64,000 bases of DNA from Amoeboaphelidium protococcarum X5 (taxonomy: Eukaryota; Fungi; Aphelidiomycota). The notes under the pieces are model-generated. The model did not search any database, was not told the DNA's origin, and saw only the letters and a list, made by a program, of their open reading frames with translations. Of this stretch, positions 1,588 to 50,068 are shown in pieces. The stretch lies in the NCBI GenBank assembly GCA_023515725.1, contig JALDTO010000136.1:186001-250000 (forward strand), read 5' to 3'. Position numbers and translations under genes: made by a program. The first letter of the stretch is position 1. Every line of letters begins with the position of its first letter.

Positions 1588-2042
1588 AGAAAAGGTACAG
1601 TTGGTTGTAATTAAATTTACTGATTTTTTTTATTCATTGCTCTAGCACTGAACAGCACTTTCGTTTTTTTTATGATGAGGATGCAGCTGAGAGATAGAGT
1701 CGCCAACAGGAGAGAAGTTCGTATGACTGTGTTACCAAGTACTAGAGAGGACCATCATTGAATTTATAGACAGGCCATACCAACACAGAACTTCTGGCAA
1801 ACTCGATTGTGAGGAGAACCACAGCAGCAAGCATCTCAATGTAATAATAATAATAATAAAAATATAAACTCTTGCCAAGGAGATCAAGCCAACTCTTAAC
1901 TGTAGACTACAGAGCAGACAAAGACGCCTTGACAAATTCGAATGGAGAAATCTATAATCTAATATCTAATGACTCTACTGTACTTCCAATGAATGAATGA
2001 CTATAATACAGATGATATGAACTACGGAAGCACAGTAATAAT

Positions 2043-2430
2043 ACTCTTGCAGTGACGCCTATGAAAGTTGACTACGGCGCCACATGCAACCAATGATAGA
2101 GAACCAGCCAAAGATACCTATGAATCTATACTACGGTATCAGTGGCTATAGGGAGAGGAGGATGACTCTTGCAGCAACGCCAATAAAAATAAACTGCGGC
2201 GCCACATGCAAAGGATGATGAGGACCAGCCAAAGATACCTATGAATCTAAACTACGGTACCAATGGCTATGAGGAGGAGGGTTATAGAGAGAGAGAGAGA
2301 GAAGAGGAGGACTCTTGCAGCGACACCAATAAGACTAGACTGCGGTGCCACATGCAAACAATGACAAGGACCAGCCGGAGATGCCTATGAATCTAAACTA
2401 CGGCACCTATGGCTATGAGGAGGGAGGACC
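2043..2430. repeat. Three diverged tandem units of ~120-146 bp inside element copy 1
   Basis: Units start ACTCTTGCAG at 2043, 2165 and 2311 and share CGG(C/T)GCCACATGCAA...ACCAGCC...CCTATGAATCTA.ACTACGG. An (AG)n tract lengthens unit 2. Confidence 0.9.
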
Positions 2431-3254
2431 AATTTGGGAATTTTAAGTACAGCTCGCCAGCCAGTCAATGAGGGAATACAATATTTAGACCAGCAGGACG
2501 AGTGACAGCACTGAGGATGGAGCAATACAGCATGCCTTGTATTAGCAACCATCCAAATAAGGGGGTGAGACTTACAGCAGAGGAAGGGACGAAGCTATCA
2601 ATAATCAGAGTCGGGCCATTTAAGTGCTCAAGTTTAAATATAACTCTGCAAGGCCATCTAGACTCAACTTTTATCCTCTTCCACCAGCTCACTTTTTTTA
2701 TCACCTTGGCATTAGCACTGACAGCTATTGATAATTTTTATAGGGCCAGTTAAACTTAATGCCAATACCAAGGCGGCGCGCGAGTCAAGCATGCCAGCAG
2801 TTAGCAACACCAGGACAGAGCTATTTCATTGGCAAGCCACTATAATTTGGTCGACAGACAGTGGATTAAGATTTTTATCCAACAGCTGGCCAGAAAGATT
2901 GGGATTGTGCAGTCCTTGTCGGTATTCAGCTATAAGAGAGACCCGCGCGCCAATTTAATTTACACCACCAGGGCCACTGGCCCATTCCAAACCCAGCACT
3001 TTGCCGGGCATATAATTACTGGCCTTCACCGGCCACCACCCACTCAGCTTTCTTCTATGGCCATCACCGGCCCACCCTTCCATCCGCCAGCCAACCAGCC
3101 AGCTTTTCTTTACGGCCAACACCGGCCCACCAACCAAACACCCAGCTACTCATGGCCCTGCAATGACCATAAGTGCTTTAATATGACTGAGACCCATCCA
3201 GCACCTCTTCGCCAAGTAGCCAGAGTAATCACCAACCTGAGAAGCAGCGATCCG

Positions 3255-3930
3255 ATAGAATGACAGCATAACCTCTGCTGCTGTCATGGCACAGACCAGC
3301 ACTACAGGACCAGCTCGAGCTCCAACCACCAGCAAATGAACCAGCAGAAGGAGACTTCCAGGAGGAGACACTCTAGCAAGCAAAGAAGACAGGACAAGTC
3401 AAGACGCGACCAGACGACACAGAGCAGAGGGACTCTGTGCTAAAGCAAATTTATTCTCATGCCCATTAGTATAAGGGCTTCTTTACATAATGATGAGCCA
3501 ACTCACAGGAAGATTTCCATCTGTGAGGCTCTCTAGCTTCAGACACCACAATTGGTTGTGCCAGTCCTTTCAAAGGCACCATTTTTTAATTTTCAAAAGC
3601 AATGCCAGGATGCCCTGCAGGCTAGCTCAACTTTTTTTCTTTTTAAACCATTTGGCCTTCTCAATAGCCATTAGACAAGAAACTCAACCCAACTGGTAGC
3701 TGCGGTTCAATAGAAAGGCAAGCATGACCTCTGCTGCTGCCTTGGTACAAACCAGCGCTATAGAGCCAGCACAAGCTCCATCTACCAGCACATCAACCAG
3801 AGGACGGAGACCACCAGTATGAGAAAACTTCAACCAGCTATTGAGAAGCAAACGGTGTTAGACGACCTTTTTATTTCACGGAGCAGAGGACCCCATGTGG
3901 TGATAACTTTAAACCCATTAGTATTTAGGG
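3255..3930. repeat. Diverged ~220 bp internal direct repeat (about 3255-3477 vs 3710-3930)
   Basis: AGCAT(A/G)ACCTCTGCTGCTG...ACCAGC...AGCTCCA...GAGCAGAGG...CCCATTAGTAT occurs twice. Confidence 0.75.
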
Positions 3931-6250
3931 TGAATTGATAATTTATAGACTTTCTTCTGCCATCATTAAGCAGAGATCTTTCATAGATAATCTTTAATAT
4001 TAACTCACTTAGTGAGAGAATAAAGGCATCATTTAGTGCACACGATAGACAAGGTCCTTTTTACAATCTAACAGATTTTTAAAGCAATGAATAATACACT
4101 TTATAGCGAATTTTTGGTTACTATGAGCAAATATTAACATCCAGTGCATATAAGATCAGGTCTTTACAAACTTCAGGCAGTATGAGCACTGCGTAAAGCA
4201 TACAGCCAGTATTTCAGTTTTTAAAGAGCGACCTAGATACATTCGTCATAGAGAACCAACAACCAATTAAGAAAGCTTTCTTATCATCAATTAACGTCAG
4301 TACCAAGAGTAGATTAGCCATTGGACGTCAAGACACAGAAGCCCAATAAACAAAGTCTCTGGAGAGCCATTTTACGACAGAGGCAATATCACATAAATCA
4401 AAAGACATGGAAGTAATGGCCCAATAAACAAAGCCTTAATGTAGCGTTGTGCGGTAGTCATGAATGACATGGAAAAGCAGCTGTGCAGTGAACAAAGACT
4501 TTGCAGTGCAATTTGGACAAATCATTAAGCACATATAGTGAGCCAGTGTTAGAAACACGTAGCAGCAGTGTAACTAAATCTTGAAGTTATCTTTTTACAT
4601 ATGACAACAGCCATTCATAGAGCAATTGCACACGACTACCTTGTGAAGTAGTCTATTACCAGAGTTAGAGGCAAGAGCAAAGACGTGAACAGCAAACATA
4701 GAGTTGAACTTTGATCTAGATCCGACACAAACCACCACATGCACACTAGGAAGTTTTCAGCATACCAGTAAGCAATTCATGCATCATTCGGCCTGAGAGA
4801 AACACCAAATGAGTGATTTTAGAAACAGAGCCTTGAATCAACTGAGAGGCGCTTCAGTTATAATCTTGAATGCTTCTTCTAAACTGACAGTGAAGCGACA
4901 ACCTACACAAATACAGTAGTAATGGATAAAACAAAACAGTACAAGTCTGTATAATAAGCTTACGGGATAAAAGAGATTAATGAATAGAAGCCTTATAGTC
5001 AAGCAATAAGAAGGACAGCAGGACTGAGAAACATTAGAGAGCAGCCAACCTTGTATACAAGCCTTGTAAACAGATGTCATCGAGTAGCAGCATGAGATTA
5101 GAAAGGAGTCAAAGTGAGCTTTGAGAGAGCTAAGAGATTGAGGGAAGCTTTGAGGCCGCAGAGAGCAGGAGAGCCACCATAAAGACACATCATTCATCAA
5201 ATCAAACCAACCCAAACTTGAGAGGACCGCAGTAGATAGATAGACAGAACAGAACAGGACAGTAGACGGATCGTTTCACATGGAGAGACCGAGAGACAGC
5301 ATGACCACCAGCGAGCGATGAGCATCGGATATCGAGACCTCCACCAAGTAGCATTAATATCGCAGATAGGATGCACAGCGAGTTATCAACCATGGGAAAT
5401 GTTCTTGGATGAAGAGTGATAATGAAAGTGGAGAAGAGAGTAAGACTGGGATTGTGGGATTGTTTGATTGTGGAACATTGTGCGATGGTTTCAGATTTGA
5501 AACGGGGCTTGAGTGAAACGGGCACCACTAAATGGTAACTTGGTCAGTTCTTGATCAATTTCTTTGGGAATAAGCTCATCTGCCGTTTCAGAAAACGATC
5601 TATCGATTGGTATTAATATCGACGGTACTCCAGAATGAGTGTTGAGTTGGAGCATGTTTCGTGAGTGTGAGTGGTCGTCCCAATTAGGAAACTCGTGCGC
5701 GCTCGCTCGTCGCTGAAACGGGTCGACCGGGTCGAGACAATGAGTCCGAAAGTCCAACTATGGACAACACAGACGGTAGGCGTAAAGCATTAGCATAGAC
5801 TAGAGTATCAAATATATATATATCTCCATGTTGCTAAAATTATTAATATTCACCTCTAGATGACTCTTTTCAAAGAAGCTATAAAGCTAGCATAATCTCT
5901 TGGTTCATCTAGTAGGTTATGGTTCACATCATACGAACGGAATTTCTTTTGCCCAAGTCTTAAGCACCGTTAAGTTTTGTCAAAGCATATGAGGAGCCTG
6001 ATCCTCACTCTAACTGTACAAACTAGCTGTTATATAGTACGTTAGTTGAATCAAGAAGGATCTTTCACACAGCATGCGCGTTGTATTTAATCGGTAAAAG
6101 TTCTACCATTAAAGCCATGTAAACCGCGCCACGATGAACTTTTGAATTCTCTGGAATTTCAATATTCATTCTCTCTCTTTATCTACTAGCACACAGCATT
6201 TTTCATTTAATCAGTGAATAATTAATCACTGACAGCAATTAGAGAATATC

Positions 6251-42500: not shown

Positions 42501-43785
42501 CTTAATCCACTGTCTGTCGACCAAATTATAGTGGCTGGCCAATGAAATAGCTCTGTCCTGGTGTTGCTAACTGCTGGCATGCTTGACCCGCGCGCCGCCT
42601 TGGTATTGGTCAAAAAATCAACTGGCTTTATAAAAATTTTGATACAAGTCAATGCCAATACCAAGGATATAAAATTTGAGCTGGTGGAAGATGACAAAGA
42701 CTGAGTCTAGATGGCCTTGCAGAGTTATATTTATACTTGAGCACTTAATTGGCCCGACTCCTACATTTGATATTTCTGTCTCTTCCTCTACCGTAAGTCT
42801 CACTCCCTTTTTGGATGATTGCTAATACAAGGCATGCTGTATGGCTTCATCCTCGGTTCTCTAACTCGTTTTGCTGGTGCAGCCTTGCTGGCCTCGTATC
42901 TGGTTGTTCCTCTTATTCTGGCCGGCGAGCTGTACGAAGAACTTTTTTTATTGGTTCTCCTCCTCATAGTCACAGGTGCCGTAGTATAGATTCATAGGCA
43001 TCTTTGGCTGCTCCCTATCATCATTTGTATGTAGCGCCGCAGTCTATTCTTATTGGCGCTACTGCAAGAGTATCCATCCTCCTCCTCCACTTACTTATAG
43101 CCACTGGTGCCGTAGTTTAGATTCATAGGCATCTTTGGCGGGTCCTCATCATCATTTGCATGTGGCGCCGCAGTTTATTTTTATTGGCGTTGCTGCAAGA
43201 GTCATCCTCCTCTCCTCATCGCCACTGGTACCGTAGTCTACATTCATAGGTATCTTTGGCTGGCCCTCTATCATTGGTTGCATGTGGCGCCGTAGTCAAC
43301 TTTCATAGGCGTCACTGCAAGAGTATTACTGTGCTTCCGTAGTTCATATCATCTGTATTATAGTCATTCTTTCATTGGAAGTACAGTAGAGTCATTAGAT
43401 ATTAGATTATAGATTCCTCCATTCGAATTTGTCAAGGCGTCTTTGTCTGCTCTGTAGTCTACAGTTAAGAGTTGGCTTGATCTCCTTGGCAAGAGTTTAT
43501 CTTATTATTACATTGAGATGCATTGCTGCTGTGGTTCTCCTCACAATCGAGTTTGCCAGAAGTTCTGTGTTGGTATGGCCTGTCTATAAATTCTATGATG
43601 GTCCTCTGGTACTTGGTAACACAGTCATACGAACTTCTCTCCTGTTGGCGACTCTATCTCTCAGCTGCATTCTCATCATAAAAAAAAAACGAAAGTGCTG
43701 TTCAGTGCTAGAGCAATGAATAAAAAAATCAGTAAATTTAATTACTACTAACTGTATCTTTTCTTCATCCTTTTTGTTATTGTAT
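39571..43785. mobile_element. ~4.2 kb dispersed repeat element, copy 2 (inverted relative to copy 1)
   Basis: Reverse complement of 1570-5738. On the minus strand it ends GCTCGT-CGCTGAA-ACGGGC-CGAATGGGC-CTAG. Confidence 0.75.
42958..43324. repeat. Three tandem ~120-130 bp units inside element copy 2
   Basis: Recurrent CCGTAGT..A.ATTCATAGG.ATCTTTGGC and TGCAAGAGT blocks. Confidence 0.88.
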
Positions 43786-44603
43786 CACAGCATTATACTT
43801 TGCAGTTGTGACAACTACTGTAACAAGTGCCCGCTTTACGTACGCGCGTCTCTTTCACAGTAACGCTTTTTCAAACTTTTAAGGAAACCACTCAATAGTT
43901 TTACACTCGGAAAATTTCAAATTGAATTGCTTCACTTGTATAAACTAAAAAACACCAATTGAGTATCGATACGCCAGATTAATGGGATTATCCAGTTCAA
44001 TTTCATGGACTGTGTGCTGTTTTCGGCTAGGAAGTGAGGGAACTCGATCAATTGTCAAGCGATAAGTCAGAGTATGAAACTTTTGCCATGGTACCCACTC
44101 ATAGAGATATAAAGGTGACCAAGAACGAGGCATAAAAGATTGAACGTTAGATTGCACAGCGACTGATAGAGGAGCAGAAGTTTTGTGTAAATGAATCTTG
44201 GACTAGACTGTATCACATGCACATGTATATCAGAGAATCTACAAGCTCATACTCAACGATTTGACATTAAAAAACGTTCAAGCGAACTAAGGACCTACAA
44301 AGCTTTCCGCTTCTACATGACCCCTGATTCAGACTTTACGTATAGTAAATATCTGGTTTGTAATAATTTCTCAAGGACATGTCTAAGCTGTAAGAACTTC
44401 ATATCTACACCTTGGGATCGCGTTCTTTGGAAATTCGGCTGATCGCAGCCTCCTATAGATCCGCAACAAGCTCTTCAAGAGATCCTCGACCCATCGCTAA
44501 TCAAACGACTATATACTGCGCAATTAACGACGCGAACTAACGCTCGCCCTTCTTAATAGCAAAAAGGCCACTTCCTCTGGTGAACCTAATCTGATAAAAA
44601 AGA

Positions 44604-45272
44604 ATGGACGCAGCTCATCTGGCAAAAGAGTGCCGTATTGCTTACGGATGGAATAGAAGAGACTCTGCATTTTACGTGAGTGAATTTTTGAATTTTTGGA
44701 TGCCTTTGAAAGCGTATGCCGGAGACTTTGATGGAATTATAATATCGCCACCAGAGATTATTGACAAGGTATGGCACGTTGCGCTTTTGGATACCAAGGA
44801 ATACTCTGATCATTGCCAACGCGTGTTGAGAGTTCAATTCATCCACCACAGTTCTAAGCGAGCCTATGATGACTAACGAACGTTAGCGGAGAGGAGATAG
44901 AACACATTGGCCTTATTTGATTAGAAATGGCCTGGAGAACGCGACGTGTCCGTTTGGAATTTTCCTTCTGATCGAGCCGCCGCTGATTCTCAATAAGATG
45001 CCCGACGCTCGAAACGATTGAAGGCAGATGCCACGTAATGGATTGCGGTGAACATTACGACTCTTACTGGAAGGAAGTTCAATGTCTTTGTATAGGACAA
45101 CTCTACAGTTGAGGCCCTAAAACAGAAGATTTATATTAGAGAAGGGTTACCTGGAAAAGACCAACGTCTGATCTTTGCGGATTAGTAACTTGAAGATGGG
45201 AGAACTTTATAGTCCTATAATATTAAGGATCACTCGGTCGTGCATTTGGCATTACGTTCAAGAGGATGCTGA
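44604..45272 (+). CDS. GRDP/DUF1399-like domain plus ubiquitin-like domain ending LRSRGC (paralogue A), 222 aa
   Basis: YGW...SEFLNFW...SPPEIIDKVWH...DTKEY..HC..VL..FIHH, then TLTGRK...EGLP..DQRLIFADQQLEDGRTLQSYNI...HLALRSRGC-TGA. Confidence 0.88.
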
Positions 45273-45665
45273 ATGTCTTTATCTTTTTCGTGATTGCGGA
45301 TGTTTAATCAATATATGGTTTCGTTTTGTTTCATGGTGCCACTACTGGCTGAATATCGAACGAGGGCGTTTTCTCAAGTTGGCACAAAACGTTACGGCTA
45401 TGAGTATAATTTATATCTATCTATTAGTTTACTTGGCGTCTTTCCTCTTAATTATTTAGCTTGTCATAAACATGAGAGTTTAAGGGAATAATGAATATTT
45501 TCGCTGCATTTCATATTCTGCACATGCACTGACAAAGTTGGCAATTTCAAAATATCAGAGACGCGCTCTTGCTTCTTCTTGTACTTGTACTTGCACGTTT
45601 CACAATATCATTTTCCACTGCTCTTTATATCTCATTACTTTGTAAATCTGTATTACATTCAGAAC

Positions 45666-46337
45666 ATGGATTCTGGACACTTGGCCAGAGAATGTAGTCG
45701 AGTCTACAATTGGAATAGAAGAGATTCTGCCTACTATGTCAGTGAGTTTCTAAACTATTGGATGCCGCTTAAAGCTTATGCTGACGATTAAGAAGCCACG
45801 ATACTATATCCGCCCAAAGTGATTGATCAAGTATGGCTCATTGCCATATTAGATACTCAAGAATACGAAGACCATTGCCACGAATTGCTAAATGTTCCGA
45901 TAATGAATTACAGCTCCAAACGTGCTTACGATGAAGTTGAAACATTGAGAGATCGTCAGGAGATGACAATCGCGCTGTTCGACAAGAGGTGGCCTGGTGA
46001 GCGTGATGAGTCCGTGTGGAGCTTCCCTACTAATGATGATGAGAATACACCTCCGGCTCAGACAACAAGACGCTCTAAACGTCTTAAATCTGGTGCTTCA
46101 GAAAAAATTAGCTTCATTATCAAAACGTTGACTGGAAAAAGCATATCAGTCACTTTAAAACAGTCCTCCACTGTGGAACGTTTGAAATGCGAACTGTTTT
46201 TAAAAGAAGGCATACCCACAAGGCAATAACGCCTTATTTTCAGTGGTCGTCAACTTGAAGATCCGAAAACTTTGCAAGATTATCACATCGAAAATGATTC
46301 GGTTTTGCATTTAGTATTACGTTTGTTGGCATGTTGA
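45666..46337 (+). CDS. GRDP/DUF1399-like domain plus ubiquitin-like domain ending LRLLAC (paralogue B), 223 aa
   Basis: Aligns with paralogue [10 protein letters not shown]...[29 protein letters not shown]...[13 protein letters not shown]. Confidence 0.88.
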
Positions 46338-46560
46338 AGAAGTGTAGAACTTTGTATATTTTAGTTCCTATGTTTTATCATCATAGTGTTTCAGCTTCAA
46401 CACCTTCGTGTCTACTGTGACGCGTTCCTTCTCCTGTTCGCGTTGTGCCTCTTCTGCGTCATCAAACGGAACTTTGGCCTGTTTTAGCTTAACAATTGCC
46501 GACTCTTGCATTGCTTTGCGTCTTCTACTATAGTATTTAGTAGCACTTTATACTATCATT

Positions 46561-47238
46561 ATGGACACTCTATATTTGGCAAAAGAATGCTCAAAAGTAT
46601 ATGGCTGGACTAGAAAAGATTCGGCATATTATGTCAGTGAATTTATCAATTTTTGGCTCCCTCTTAAAGCGCATGCAAAAGATTTCGATGGTACAAAGTT
46701 GTCACCGCCTTATATTATTGATCAAGTATGGCATCTGGCTCTGCGAGATAGCTAGGAATACAGTGATCACTGCACCAATGTTTTAAAGACAGAACAGCTG
46801 ATTCATCACAGTACTAAAAGAGCTTATGACGATATCAAGACCTTGACTGAGAGAAGATAGCGCACATTGGACTTGTATGATGAACTTTACCCGGGCGAGC
46901 GGGATGAAACTTTATGGAAGTTGCCTGAAGAATCATCAACTGCTACGGCACCGGGCAAGTCTGTGAAGACTAATAAGCGTCAAAGGCCTGGAGTTAAGCC
47001 GAGGATTAGTGTAGTAGTAATGACTGAAGAGGGGAATCGATTAACTTATAGTATATCAGAGACTACAAGGATTTAGGCTTTGTTATCAGCATTATCATCT
47101 AACTTGGGGATTCCTTTCGAGAAGTTGCGTCTGTTCGACGTAACAGCAGAAAGGCTATACGCGCACAGATCGCTGCAAGAGAGTGGCATTTAAGATAATG
47201 ACCTAATACATGTGATAGTAGAAAAATGCGGCTGTTGA
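46561..47238 (+). CDS. GRDP/DUF1399-like domain plus SUMO-like/divergent Ubl domain ending EKCGC (paralogue C), 225 aa
   Basis: N-terminal domain aligns with A and B. C-terminal RISVVVMTEEGNRLTYSISETTRI...GIPFEKLRLF...SLQESGIQDNDLIHVIVEKCGC-TGA. Confidence 0.85.
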
Positions 47239-47374
47239 AGACTGATGCTATTTAATGAGTTACCAGTGAATAAGAAAGTGTTGGTGTTTTATTTGCACTA
47301 TTGTCCTTAAACAGCTGAAAGTATCTAAAGGGAAACATAATGAGTGATTTCACTTGATCTTATGTATTTAAAAT

Positions 47375-50068
47375 TCAAAGTTCACGACTCAATGTTTTGA
47401 AGCTGAATGGAGTAAACGGATGGCCACCACCTTCGTAAAACTTTCCATTGAACTCGACCCAATGCAGACGCAACGCGTGTAAGAATGCAGATAATCCCTC
47501 CATACCTACTAGGATACCCACAGTCAACTGGAACCACATGTAGAATCCGGCTACAAGCATCACACTAGACAGAGTGGACTGAATCGTCATCTCCCACAAC
47601 ACTTCTGACAGCTGGGCATGAGCCAGACTTAGAGCCCAGAGACGTAGATACGACGCCGTGTTGGATATAGCACCGAGACAGAACTCGATCGTGTGAATAA
47701 CCTGATGAATAACAATCTCACCAAACTCAAATTTGCCGCCATGCTCTCCACCACCACCATGGAAATCGCCACTACCATCAGTAATAGATGCAGCATCAGC
47801 AATTCCATTTCCGTGCTGTAACTCAGTTGCCGTTGGAAGCAAACTTGCACCACCAGCAGCAGCAGTACTTGCACCACCATTTCCATCCAGATTAACGTGT
47901 ACATCCGGCTTGATGACTTCGCTGTCATGAGATCTAGCACCAGGACTATCACCACCTATAGTAGTGTATCCCATTGCAATATTGCGCTAGTGTTACTTGT
48001 ACAGTTTATAAGGCTTAACACACAACATCCACGGCACACATATCACAGCGACGAGTAGCAAAATGGTCTACACAACAGCCTGACCACCAAACAGCTCCGT
48101 ACCTTCCTTAACACCACCTAGTCCCAGGAACATGTAGATCAGAGTATTCAGCAGACTAGGAGGATCATCACCAGGCACACGCCATGGATACAGCCACTTG
48201 AAGATTATCAGGAAAGAGAGATAACCAAAAATGCTGAGCATAAACAGCAGTTATGGAATGAACTCGTGATACAAATTCAATGGCCGCTTAAAGTATCTAC
48301 TATTGTAGACAGTCAGAATGATACCAAAGCACATGTGCAGCACACCAATCAGAATAGACTACTTCATTTTGTATGAATTCAGAAAGAGAAGACTATTATC
48401 AGCCTATCTCCATGCAGGATCAATACCGAAGGCATAAGGATACAAGAACGTGGAGTTGAACGACTATACCTGAGTAGTCTCATTCTTAAATATCTCAATA
48501 TCCCAGCCAGAACTCTACATGTACAGCGGTAGGGAGAAGAAGTCATTATAAATCAAGCCTACATACATTGAAAAGAAGCCCATCAGTAAAACTATATATC
48601 TTCCACCAAATACAATCGCCACCATTTCACCCAATTCCATCTACTCCATTTTCTTTTCGTTCAACACCAAACACAAGCCGGCAAAGAACACCAGCAGACC
48701 GTGCCCCAAATCACCAAACATGATGGCGAACAGGAATGGGAAGGTAATAACGGTGAACAGTCCCGGATTAACTTCTTTGTACGTAGCTACGCCATATGAA
48801 TCGATAATCGCCTGAAAACCAAAGGTGAACTTGTTAGTCTTATGATAAGTAGGAGGCTAATCGTGAGTCTACAACTGATTAACAATAGGCGGCACAAGCG
48901 ATCCATTACGTTCACTTACAGAGTGCAGTGCATATTGTACAGCATTTATAGACTTGCTAGGACACCATCCCTCAGCTATCAAGCACTTTCTAGTAGAATC
49001 ATAATTAAACATGTCCATAGTAGAGTATATGGCCTTTTCTTTGCGCACAAACGTGGCCCATTTACCGATATGACGACTGATCACTTTCAACTCTGCAAGA
49101 CGCGTTGCATTTCCATTATCCAGGACCATTCTCAAATCATCCAACTTCACTGTGACGTCTCTTAAAGCTGCAGCGCGTCTACCCTCATCAACATCGACAT
49201 CATATACTGTACCTCCGAAAGACTGAGTAATCTTCTTGATCTTGTTAATCAATTCATTTCCATGGGCGAATACAATAAACACATTCTTCTCAATCTCTTC
49301 CTCACTCACAGGATCGACAATACGCTCAGAGATTTCAGCGTAATCCATGAACACATTACCTCTTAATGCGCGCCACAAAATACGCTCAAATACCTGCATC
49401 CTGCCGCGGGGAAGAGTACCAGTTACAAATTGTAATCCTGTTGAGGCTGTGGATGATCTGTTACCAGCTTCAACTTGGTCCAGCAGACTTTCTTCATAAT
49501 CATCATCATAATTCGACGCTGGTGCATTGAAAGAACCACCTCTTCTACCACCACTAGACTAAGACTGCTAGGCAAAGAAGTACTCGCACTCGCGCAATAC
49601 CTGACGCAACTCTACCAATTCCAAGTATCTCTTATTCAACTACTCCTACTAACCGTTCATCTACTGCAATCGCTATTCATACTCCTAGAATGACGACTCC
49701 AGCTCTTCCATCTATTGCATAGATCTACCTTTAACGCCAAATTTATCACCAGCAGAAGATGATGACGCTGGTGACGAATACATACTGGCGCCATTACTCG
49801 GATCAGTCAGCTTGTATTGAACATCATTCTTATCCAGTTGTGTCTTGAAGAATCTAAGCAGGCGCTCCAAGTCATCAATACGCTTCAGCTCATTAATGAA
49901 CGTACGCTGGAAAGCATTCAATCCTGAATTCAAATCTTTAAACTACACCATGCCCAACTCGCCGAGTTCAGCTACAGAGTCATGAGCCAACTCTGATGGA
50001 ATATAAAGTTGGACCAGCGACATGGTCTCGCTCCTAAACAGGGAGGACTCTTATTCATTAGCCGCCAT
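47375..50068 (-). CDS. VPH1: V-type ATPase V0 subunit a, 897 aa
   Basis: [89 protein letters not shown]. Confidence 0.97.

Follow-up and report, generated by a model that had tools for sequence, protein, structure and literature searches.

A tandem trio of GRDP-like/ubiquitin-like fusion genes

The window analyzed here is a 64,000-nucleotide (nt) stretch of a contig of the aphelid Amoeboaphelidium protococcarum. The whole window yields long genes when translated with genetic code table 6, and its open reading frames were read under this code. The window contains three intronless genes arranged head to tail, whose products carry an N-terminal domain (N-domain) and a C-terminal ubiquitin-like (Ubl) domain. 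Their features are as follows:

44604..45272, + strand: gene 1, 222 amino acids (aa); GRDP-like/UCP032817 domain, linker, and ubiquitin-type domain, ending in SRGC
44604..44963, + strand: N-domain of gene 1 (aa 1 to 120), all-helical (AlphaFold pLDDT 96.7, conservation)
Within this N-domain: conserved residues K36, D41, D54, W57, H58, Y67, C71, H81, H82, R97, and W118
45003..45023, + strand: basic linker of gene 1, RRSKRLK (from the sequence; a low-confidence stretch of the predicted model)
45042..45269, + strand: ubiquitin-type domain of gene 1, 37/71 residues identical to ubiquitin
45267–45269, + strand: terminal Cys codon of gene 1, TGC
45429, + strand: site of poly(A) addition, 157 nt downstream of the gene 1 stop
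45666..46337, + strand: gene 2, 223 aa; architecture of gene 1, ending in LLAC
46107–46334, + strand: ubiquitin-type domain of gene 2, up to the LLAC end
46561..47238, + strand: gene 3, 225 aa; gene 1–like N-domain and SUMO-leaning domain, ending in KCGC
about 47005–47235, + strand: SUMO-leaning domain of gene 3, up to the KCGC end

The table 6 reading frames, an NCBI protein identical to the read-through translation of gene 2, and unspliced transcript-like contigs (see below) confirm the earlier note's description of three intronless Cys-ended Ubl fusions, and the linker sequences also match that description. A cluster mate of gene 2 carries an A. protococcarum protein annotation, and a protein from another strain (P0004) is a near-identical counterpart of gene 1. 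As proposed earlier, the C-terminal domains have a Ubl fold, which was recovered by both Pfam and fold searches (β-grasp, Z of about 15). Ile44 is retained in the Ubl of gene 1; Lys48 and Lys63 are absent from the Ubl domains of genes 1 and 2.

The final Cys codons of genes 1, 2, and 3 are TGC, TGT, and TGT, each directly before TGA, and the sequence downstream of these TGA codons is not conserved. In alignments with ubiquitin and SUMO encoded in the same genome, the terminal Cys of the trio falls at Gly76 of ubiquitin and at the last Gly of SUMO, the register that had been claimed. The residue preceding it in gene 2 is Ala (Ala75), not Gly. No glycine-rich tail is present in the trio sequences.

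The paralogues have reached saturation at synonymous sites, and the trio is therefore old. The N-domains are 55 to 66% identical to each other; identities between the Ubl domains are 49, 24, and 21%, with 14 of 78 Ubl columns invariant. Taken alone, the trio provides weak evidence on the terminal Cys, which could have been retained in three paralogues by chance.

A hydropathy measure, as distinct from a dedicated predictor, revealed no hydrophobic signal peptide (the highest 12-residue hydropathy within the first 35 aa was 0.3 to 0.86). An N-terminal Ubl translocation header of the Crinkler type is also absent; the Ubl of the trio sits C-terminally.

A repeat-like island (window positions 39400–43800) lies just upstream of the trio; it has an inverted second copy at 1600–5800 and recurs at the homeologous locus. 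An intact V-ATPase a-subunit gene (47375–50068, − strand) converges on gene 3, with a poly(A) end near 47348.

Expression of the trio and other copies in the aphelid genome

Four public sequencing runs were analyzed. They are not recorded as RNA; their RNA status was deduced here from their resemblance to poly(A) RNA, i.e., zero coverage between genes and contigs that terminate in a poly(A) stretch at 45429 or a poly(T) stretch at 47348. Position 45429 for poly(A) addition to gene 1 comes from a loose poly(A) end of run X2; in addition, contigs end at 45426–45431 in the four runs. Gene 1 is spanned by one ungapped contig (44383–45431) with a single difference, and its Cys-stop end is thus unspliced. 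A contig at 46153–46342 matches the end of gene 2 with zero differences. For gene 3, which has the deepest contigs of the trio, a divergent allele with 27 differences provides gap-free coverage. Splicing or read-through to a GG or CAAX tail is excluded for genes 1 and 2, whose contigs match across the stop; gene 3 is ungapped. The genes are thus expressed, as the earlier idea required, since contigs resembling mRNA cross the trio with no sign of splicing or of an extended tail.

The genome contains five copies of the N-domain, two of them broken, and an aphelid-specific expansion was rejected on this count. A PF07173 search of the same genome returned no match anywhere, control loci included, and is thus uninformative. 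The two broken copies are located in a region of contig C244 that is colinear with, and about 90% identical to, the trio locus. In the first (L017, 5227–5884), the reading frame shifts around codon 30 and is interrupted by an inner TGA, and the end still reads LRLRGC. The second (L017, 6268–6942) is a chimera of a gene 2–like start and a gene 3–like body, in which a TGA at the second-last codon position stops translation before the Cys. Intact Cys-ended counterparts (P0002, P0004, and P0258) exist in another strain.

When homeologues were compared, dN/dS was 0.09 for the N-domain, 0.76 and 0.59 for the Ubl body, and 0.03 for the neighboring V-ATPase subunit. These values indicate purifying selection on the N-domain and drift of the Ubl body. 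Gene 3 and P0258 share 97% of N-domain residues and 41% of Ubl residues, and both end in GC. The fast divergence of aphelid Ubl domains could be due to relaxed or diversifying selection; since Ubl dN/dS is below 1, these values do not demonstrate an arms race.

The N-domain

In plants, the GRDP/DUF1399 domain influences growth, tolerance of stress, and seed size; it is also present in bacteria. We know of no solved structure of this domain and of no chemistry or biochemical function assigned to it. The N-domain of the trio matches PF27765 (UCP032817-like), which borders PF07173 (GRDP-like); P0004 and many relatives carry a precomputed PF27765 annotation. PF07173 is matched by 12 of 52 aligned N-domains, and the aphelid domain falls below its threshold. 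In the Atlas, the gene 1 N-domain matched GRDP-like/UCP032817 models with TM scores of 0.80 to 0.88 (0.80 to 0.82 for bacterial UCP032817 models). The profiles and the fold matches together bear out the GRDP-like assignment made from the sequence. The N-domain of gene 1 is modeled with confidence as a small helical domain, and a fold search of the PDB revealed no solved structure resembling it (best Z 3.6).

The core motif, D..WH.H.L.T..Y...C..HH..W, is present in genes 1 and 3 except for H60, which is Ala. The WH/HH pattern ascribed earlier to all three proteins holds for genes 1 and 3 but fails in gene 2, which reads WL and NY: H58, H81, and H82 are replaced by L, N, and Y, and C71 is kept. 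Among Cys-ended members of the family, W57 and Y67 are invariant; K36, D41, W118, R97, and D54 are conserved at 94 to 99%; and H58, C71, H81, and H82 are conserved at 87 to 91%, with C71 replaced in about 10%. At least one of H58, C71, and H82 is missing in 19 of 78 Cys-ended members. H82 has been lost in 4 of 11 members without a terminal Cys versus 7 of 77 members with it (P = 0.03). The full-length model (pTM 0.59) gives no indication that the two domains dock.

The terminal Cys across the family

Relatives were collected using residues 1 to 90 of gene 1 only as a query, which yielded 286 relatives among 50% representatives. Since the query contained no Ubl, the count of Cys ends is not biased toward the tail. 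A Ubl domain forms the C terminus in 73 of the best 148 non-aphelid hits, and in 65 of those 73 the last residue is Cys. This is far beyond chance, given that the Cys frequency within Ubl bodies is 1.3%, and chance retention was rejected on the family-wide count. A profile search gave 115 further hits, 105 of them ending in GC and mostly close pelagophyte-like sequences. Even among relatives lacking a terminal Ubl, 5 of 72 end in Cys (P = 0.015). A metagenome pattern scan for the family produced no match. The last residues tabulated across the family thus uphold the earlier suggestion: judged by sequence conservation, the terminal Cys is under selection.

Named hosts of the family include Pelagomonas and Aureococcus (pelagophytes), Biecheleria (a dinoflagellate), and Sanderia (a jellyfish). 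Atlas clusters with the GRDP-like plus Ubl architecture are mostly from diatoms. At the level of architecture, the N-domain fold is also matched by a protein of Terrestrivirus that carries a Ubl annotation. Profile and fold matches assign the trio to a branch of the GRDP-like/UCP032817 family that is broadly distributed in eukaryotes and extends to a giant virus. The earlier idea of a nuclear-targeted decoy specific to the parasitoid finds no support in this comparison: the family is found in free-living algae, a jellyfish, and a giant virus; there is no hydrophobic signal peptide; and an NLS-like basic motif occurs in just 27 of 80 linkers. An aphelid-specific effector is not supported by these features or by the five genomic copies.

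Two further loci are of note. On an animal-like contig (L055, 3158–4428 and 8001–8720), a SUMO-type family gene that has a frameshift and ends in RTGC is separated by 3.6 kb from an intact ubiquitin-type one that ends in LRGC. In Pelagomonas (L082, 6001–9230), a family gene lies tail to tail with CDC48/p97, a single case that may be due to chance.

The stops after the terminal Cys were inspected at eight loci (TAA at four, TAG at three, and TGA at one). These mixed stop codons and the lack of conservation past the TGA of the trio reject a Gly-Cys-Sec end of the thioredoxin reductase type. No CAAX box is present at the eight loci or in the trio, where Cys is the last residue. A lipidated terminal Cys serving as a membrane anchor, as in MUB/UBL3, was among the functions suggested earlier, and we now consider it very improbable. 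MUB/UBL3 are described as Ubl folds that use C-terminal cysteines (PMC6158211), a precedent to which the CXC end of gene 3 can be added. However, a stop follows straight after the Cys in all eight loci and the trio, leaving no CAAX, and CXC ends are rare (3 of the 65 Cys-ended Ubl relatives).

Gly precedes the Cys in 55 of the same 65 relatives. Gly75-Cys76 could in principle be a latent acyl donor, with an N-to-S shift placing Ubl(1–75) as a thioester on C71 for E1-independent transfer to an amine. The conserved Cys, His, and Arg of the N-domain recall transpeptidases. C-terminal Gly-Cys motifs, including that of engineered Ub G76C, form interceptable thioesters chemically (PMC13292101). Yet this chemical route requires heat, acid pH, and days (PMC13292101), C71 is replaced in about a tenth of Cys-ended members, and gene 2 has Ala75, which makes an acyl donor highly doubtful.

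Exchange of ubiquitin- and SUMO-type modules

The tails of 80 members were classified as ubiquitin-type (57), SUMO-type (18), or unclear (5). On the N-domain tree, the SUMO type requires seven changes, at least two of which are forced by strong branches, and a single SUMO clade was rejected (p-AU 7e-40). Tree and alignments indicate that ubiquitin- and SUMO-type modules have been exchanged repeatedly with the Cys retained. In the jellyfish clade, P0155 and P0281 have N-domains that are 83% identical, and their ends are ubiquitin-type LRGC and SUMO-type FTGC, respectively. P0047 contains an older, decayed Ubl followed by a Ubl that has 63 of 76 ubiquitin residues and ends in LRLRGC. Each swap would have either re-made the Gly-to-Cys change or kept the existing tail by recombination; either way would require selection for the Cys.

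The best pairwise hit of the gene 3 Ubl is aphelid SUMO, with which it shares a one-residue insertion, located after the RF motif in aphelid SUMO. A clean capture of aphelid SUMO was dropped, since on the tree the Ubl type of gene 3 lies between ubiquitin and SUMO, and we refer to the domain as SUMO-leaning. The two SUMO homeologues of the genome (L056 and L057) differ straight after the di-Gly (GGNMAIN and GGCMAIN).

Ubiquitin-type members retain the Ile44 face and the LRL.G tail: R42, I44, G47, H68, R72, L73, and G75 are kept at 67 to 91%, compared to 13 to 44% for other surfaces. These values, together with the exact Gly76 register of the Cys in nearly all members and the occurrence of the family in a parasitoid and giant viruses, speak for the possibility, close to the warhead proposed earlier, that an unmodified Ubl-Cys acts as a decoy, trapping the catalytic Cys of E1, E2, HECT/RBR E3, or DUB/ULP enzymes, own or host, in a disulfide. 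Engineered Ub G76C, the precursor of the cascading Ub-dehydroalanine (Ub-Dha) probe, does form disulfides with E2 (PMC11727022), but it does so under oxidizing conditions with Cu2+ (PMC11727022). Moreover, the retained residues are largely a generic Ubl signature, the obligate N-domain and the Cys tails of bacterial relatives would be left unexplained, the proteins lack a hydrophobic signal peptide, and the family is present in free-living species. We therefore regard such a decoy as rather improbable.

Bacterial and plant relatives of the N-domain

Among the 34 relatives from bacteria and viral contigs, D54, W57, H58, H60, Y67, and H82 are invariant and C71 is kept in 94%; K36 and R97 are not retained. 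A Cys is located within the last 15 residues in 27 of the 34, mostly in Gly/Ser tails with CxxxC spacing. Neighborhoods of tail-less bacterial copies were examined in five cases chosen by eye from nine, without a control; such copies adjoin Cys-containing peptides, including RiPP precursors with NHLP leaders. Among plant relatives, GRDPs have a glycine-rich C-terminal domain with a GGGCGG consensus and an RNP-1–like motif (PMC4299439). TIGR04222 proteins have been proposed to be RiPP-like substrates modified on their Cys tails (PMC12452194), and one TIGR04222 protein carries a GRDP-like/UCP032817 domain.

At locus L030 (3196–5279), two RiPP precursors that have NHLP leaders and CxxxC cores come after a stand-alone GRDP-like gene; as no other obvious modifying enzyme lies within the locus, it is a candidate new RiPP system. 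Two Bacillus loci (L025, 2522–4315, and L028) encode a 58-aa peptide of repeated Cys units, a 382-aa protein that is probably a transporter, and a stand-alone GRDP-like protein. At L034 and L052, tail-less copies lie near genes whose products have Ser/Gly/Cys tails. L023 (3935–5040) and L024 (402–824) encode GRDP-like proteins with CxxxCxxxC tails, and the L023 gene is followed by a 2-oxoglutarate dioxygenase–like gene.

The cysteine switch of metalloprotease pro-domains is a model for a static Cys-metal latch. By analogy, and in line with one of the roles offered earlier, the terminal Cys of the family might complete, as a static fourth ligand, a site for zinc or another metal formed by H58, C71, and H82, acting as a latch or a metal/redox sensor without any chemistry. 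The conservation of three potential ligands and one distant Cys, the weak coupling between H82 loss and Cys loss, and the resemblance of the CxxxC-spaced tails of bacterial and plant relatives to metal-binding tails (PMC4299439) are compatible with this. We nevertheless consider a purely static ligand unlikely: the Cys persists in gene 2 and in 18 further members that have lost a ligand, K36, D41, and R97 are better conserved than the His/Cys residues, and the model confidence does not indicate docking.

A possible function of the N-domain in handling the terminal Cys

From bacteria to plants, the constant partner of the N-domain is a C-terminal cysteine, and the Ubl is variable. The N-domain can therefore be read as binding and chemically acting on the terminal Cys via a His/Cys site, with the Ubl as an exchangeable carrier. 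We favor this reading tentatively. The N-domain would be a Cys tail–handling module, in which a pocket formed by W57, Y67, and W118 takes the terminal Cys, and K36, D41, and R97 may suit the free C-terminal carboxylate. A probable metal site (H58, C71, and H82) would lie beside the pocket. The terminal Cys could reach the pocket either in cis, by way of the flexible linker of 25 residues, or in trans, being supplied by a paralogue; the N-domain would activate it as a thiolate and then modify it. The ubiquitin/SUMO fold would present the tail and could still bind ubiquitin receptors, and the loss of Gly76 would keep the protein outside normal E1 conjugation. Copies lacking the His residues, such as gene 2, may be substrates for active paralogues.

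The idea that the N-domain handles the terminal Cys is consistent with Cys ends in nearly all Ubl-ended relatives and in some Ubl-less ones, with Ubl swaps in which the Cys is kept, and with the low dN/dS of the N-domain. It also agrees with the Cys tails and peptide neighbors in bacteria, with more frequent H82 loss in members without the Cys, and with the proposal on TIGR04222 tails. Against it are the Cys-ended members without a His/Cys ligand, a full-length model that shows no docking, and the uncontrolled choice of bacterial neighborhoods; the kept Ile44 face and LRL.G tail fit binding to ubiquitin enzymes equally. Since no solved structure resembles the N-domain, it has no catalytic precedent.

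An extension that we view as distinctly improbable is that the N-domain is a RiPP-like enzyme that makes its own terminal Cys electrophilic (dehydroalanine or enethiol). The product would be a self-arming, Ub-Dha–like trap of E1/E2/E3 or DUB/ULP enzymes, with ubiquitin- and SUMO-type modules aiming it at two pathways.

Comparison with known systems

No residue in ubiquitin biology is more fixed than Gly76, and a C-terminal glycine is needed for normal tagging. That a natural family has repeatedly recruited ubiquitin and SUMO, each time with Cys at this position, suggests that the fold is used outside the E1-E2-E3 rule and points to a cysteine-based job for ubiquitin folds. It also offers a small (25 kDa), soluble, single-cysteine handle on the GRDP/DUF1399 domain. 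Each of the two domains already has a catalog entry, and their combination is present in the Atlas in the form of unnamed clusters. In the literature searched, mostly papers outside subscription, we found no published description of the GRDP-like plus Ubl fusion or of its terminal Cys, and the family is apparently undescribed.

The trio shares the N-domain motif, the predicted fold, and a distant Cys-containing C-terminal tail with AtGRDP1/2 of Arabidopsis and with bacterial TIGR04222 fusions. Known GRDP-like (PF07173, DUF1399) and UCP032817-like (PF27765) members have low-complexity Gly/Ser/Cys tails with several Cys, whereas the trio has one terminal Cys on a folded ubiquitin/SUMO domain and lacks the GGGCGG/RNP-1–like glycine-rich domain of the AtGRDP1/2 type.

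The β-grasp fold is common to the family and to ubiquitin, NEDD8, and SUMO, and the Ile44 face and tail length are kept. Type I modifiers end in Gly-Gly; in contrast, the trio has Cys and then a stop in both the genome and transcript-like contigs, and its Ubl follows another domain, without a processing site. Rad60/Esc2/NIP45 proteins likewise have a non-conjugated C-terminal SUMO-like/ubiquitin-like domain (PF11976 hits), but they have neither the GRDP-like N-domain nor a conserved terminal Cys; one hit of the Rad60-SLD type in the aphelid genome ends in QQAK.

MUB/UBL3 resembles the trio family in using a C-terminal cysteine, not Gly-Gly, on a Ubl fold. It is stand-alone and has a CAAX box, whereas the trio family has a single last Cys in the Gly76 register and an obligate N-domain. 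The C terminus of engineered Ub G76C (LRLRGC) is identical to that of many relatives. Ub-Dha, made from Ub G76C, passes along and traps E1, E2, and E3 (PMC11727022), and no natural counterpart of these probes was found in the literature searched. Ub G76C and Ub-Dha are laboratory reagents, unlike the family described here, which carries the same terminal Cys naturally.
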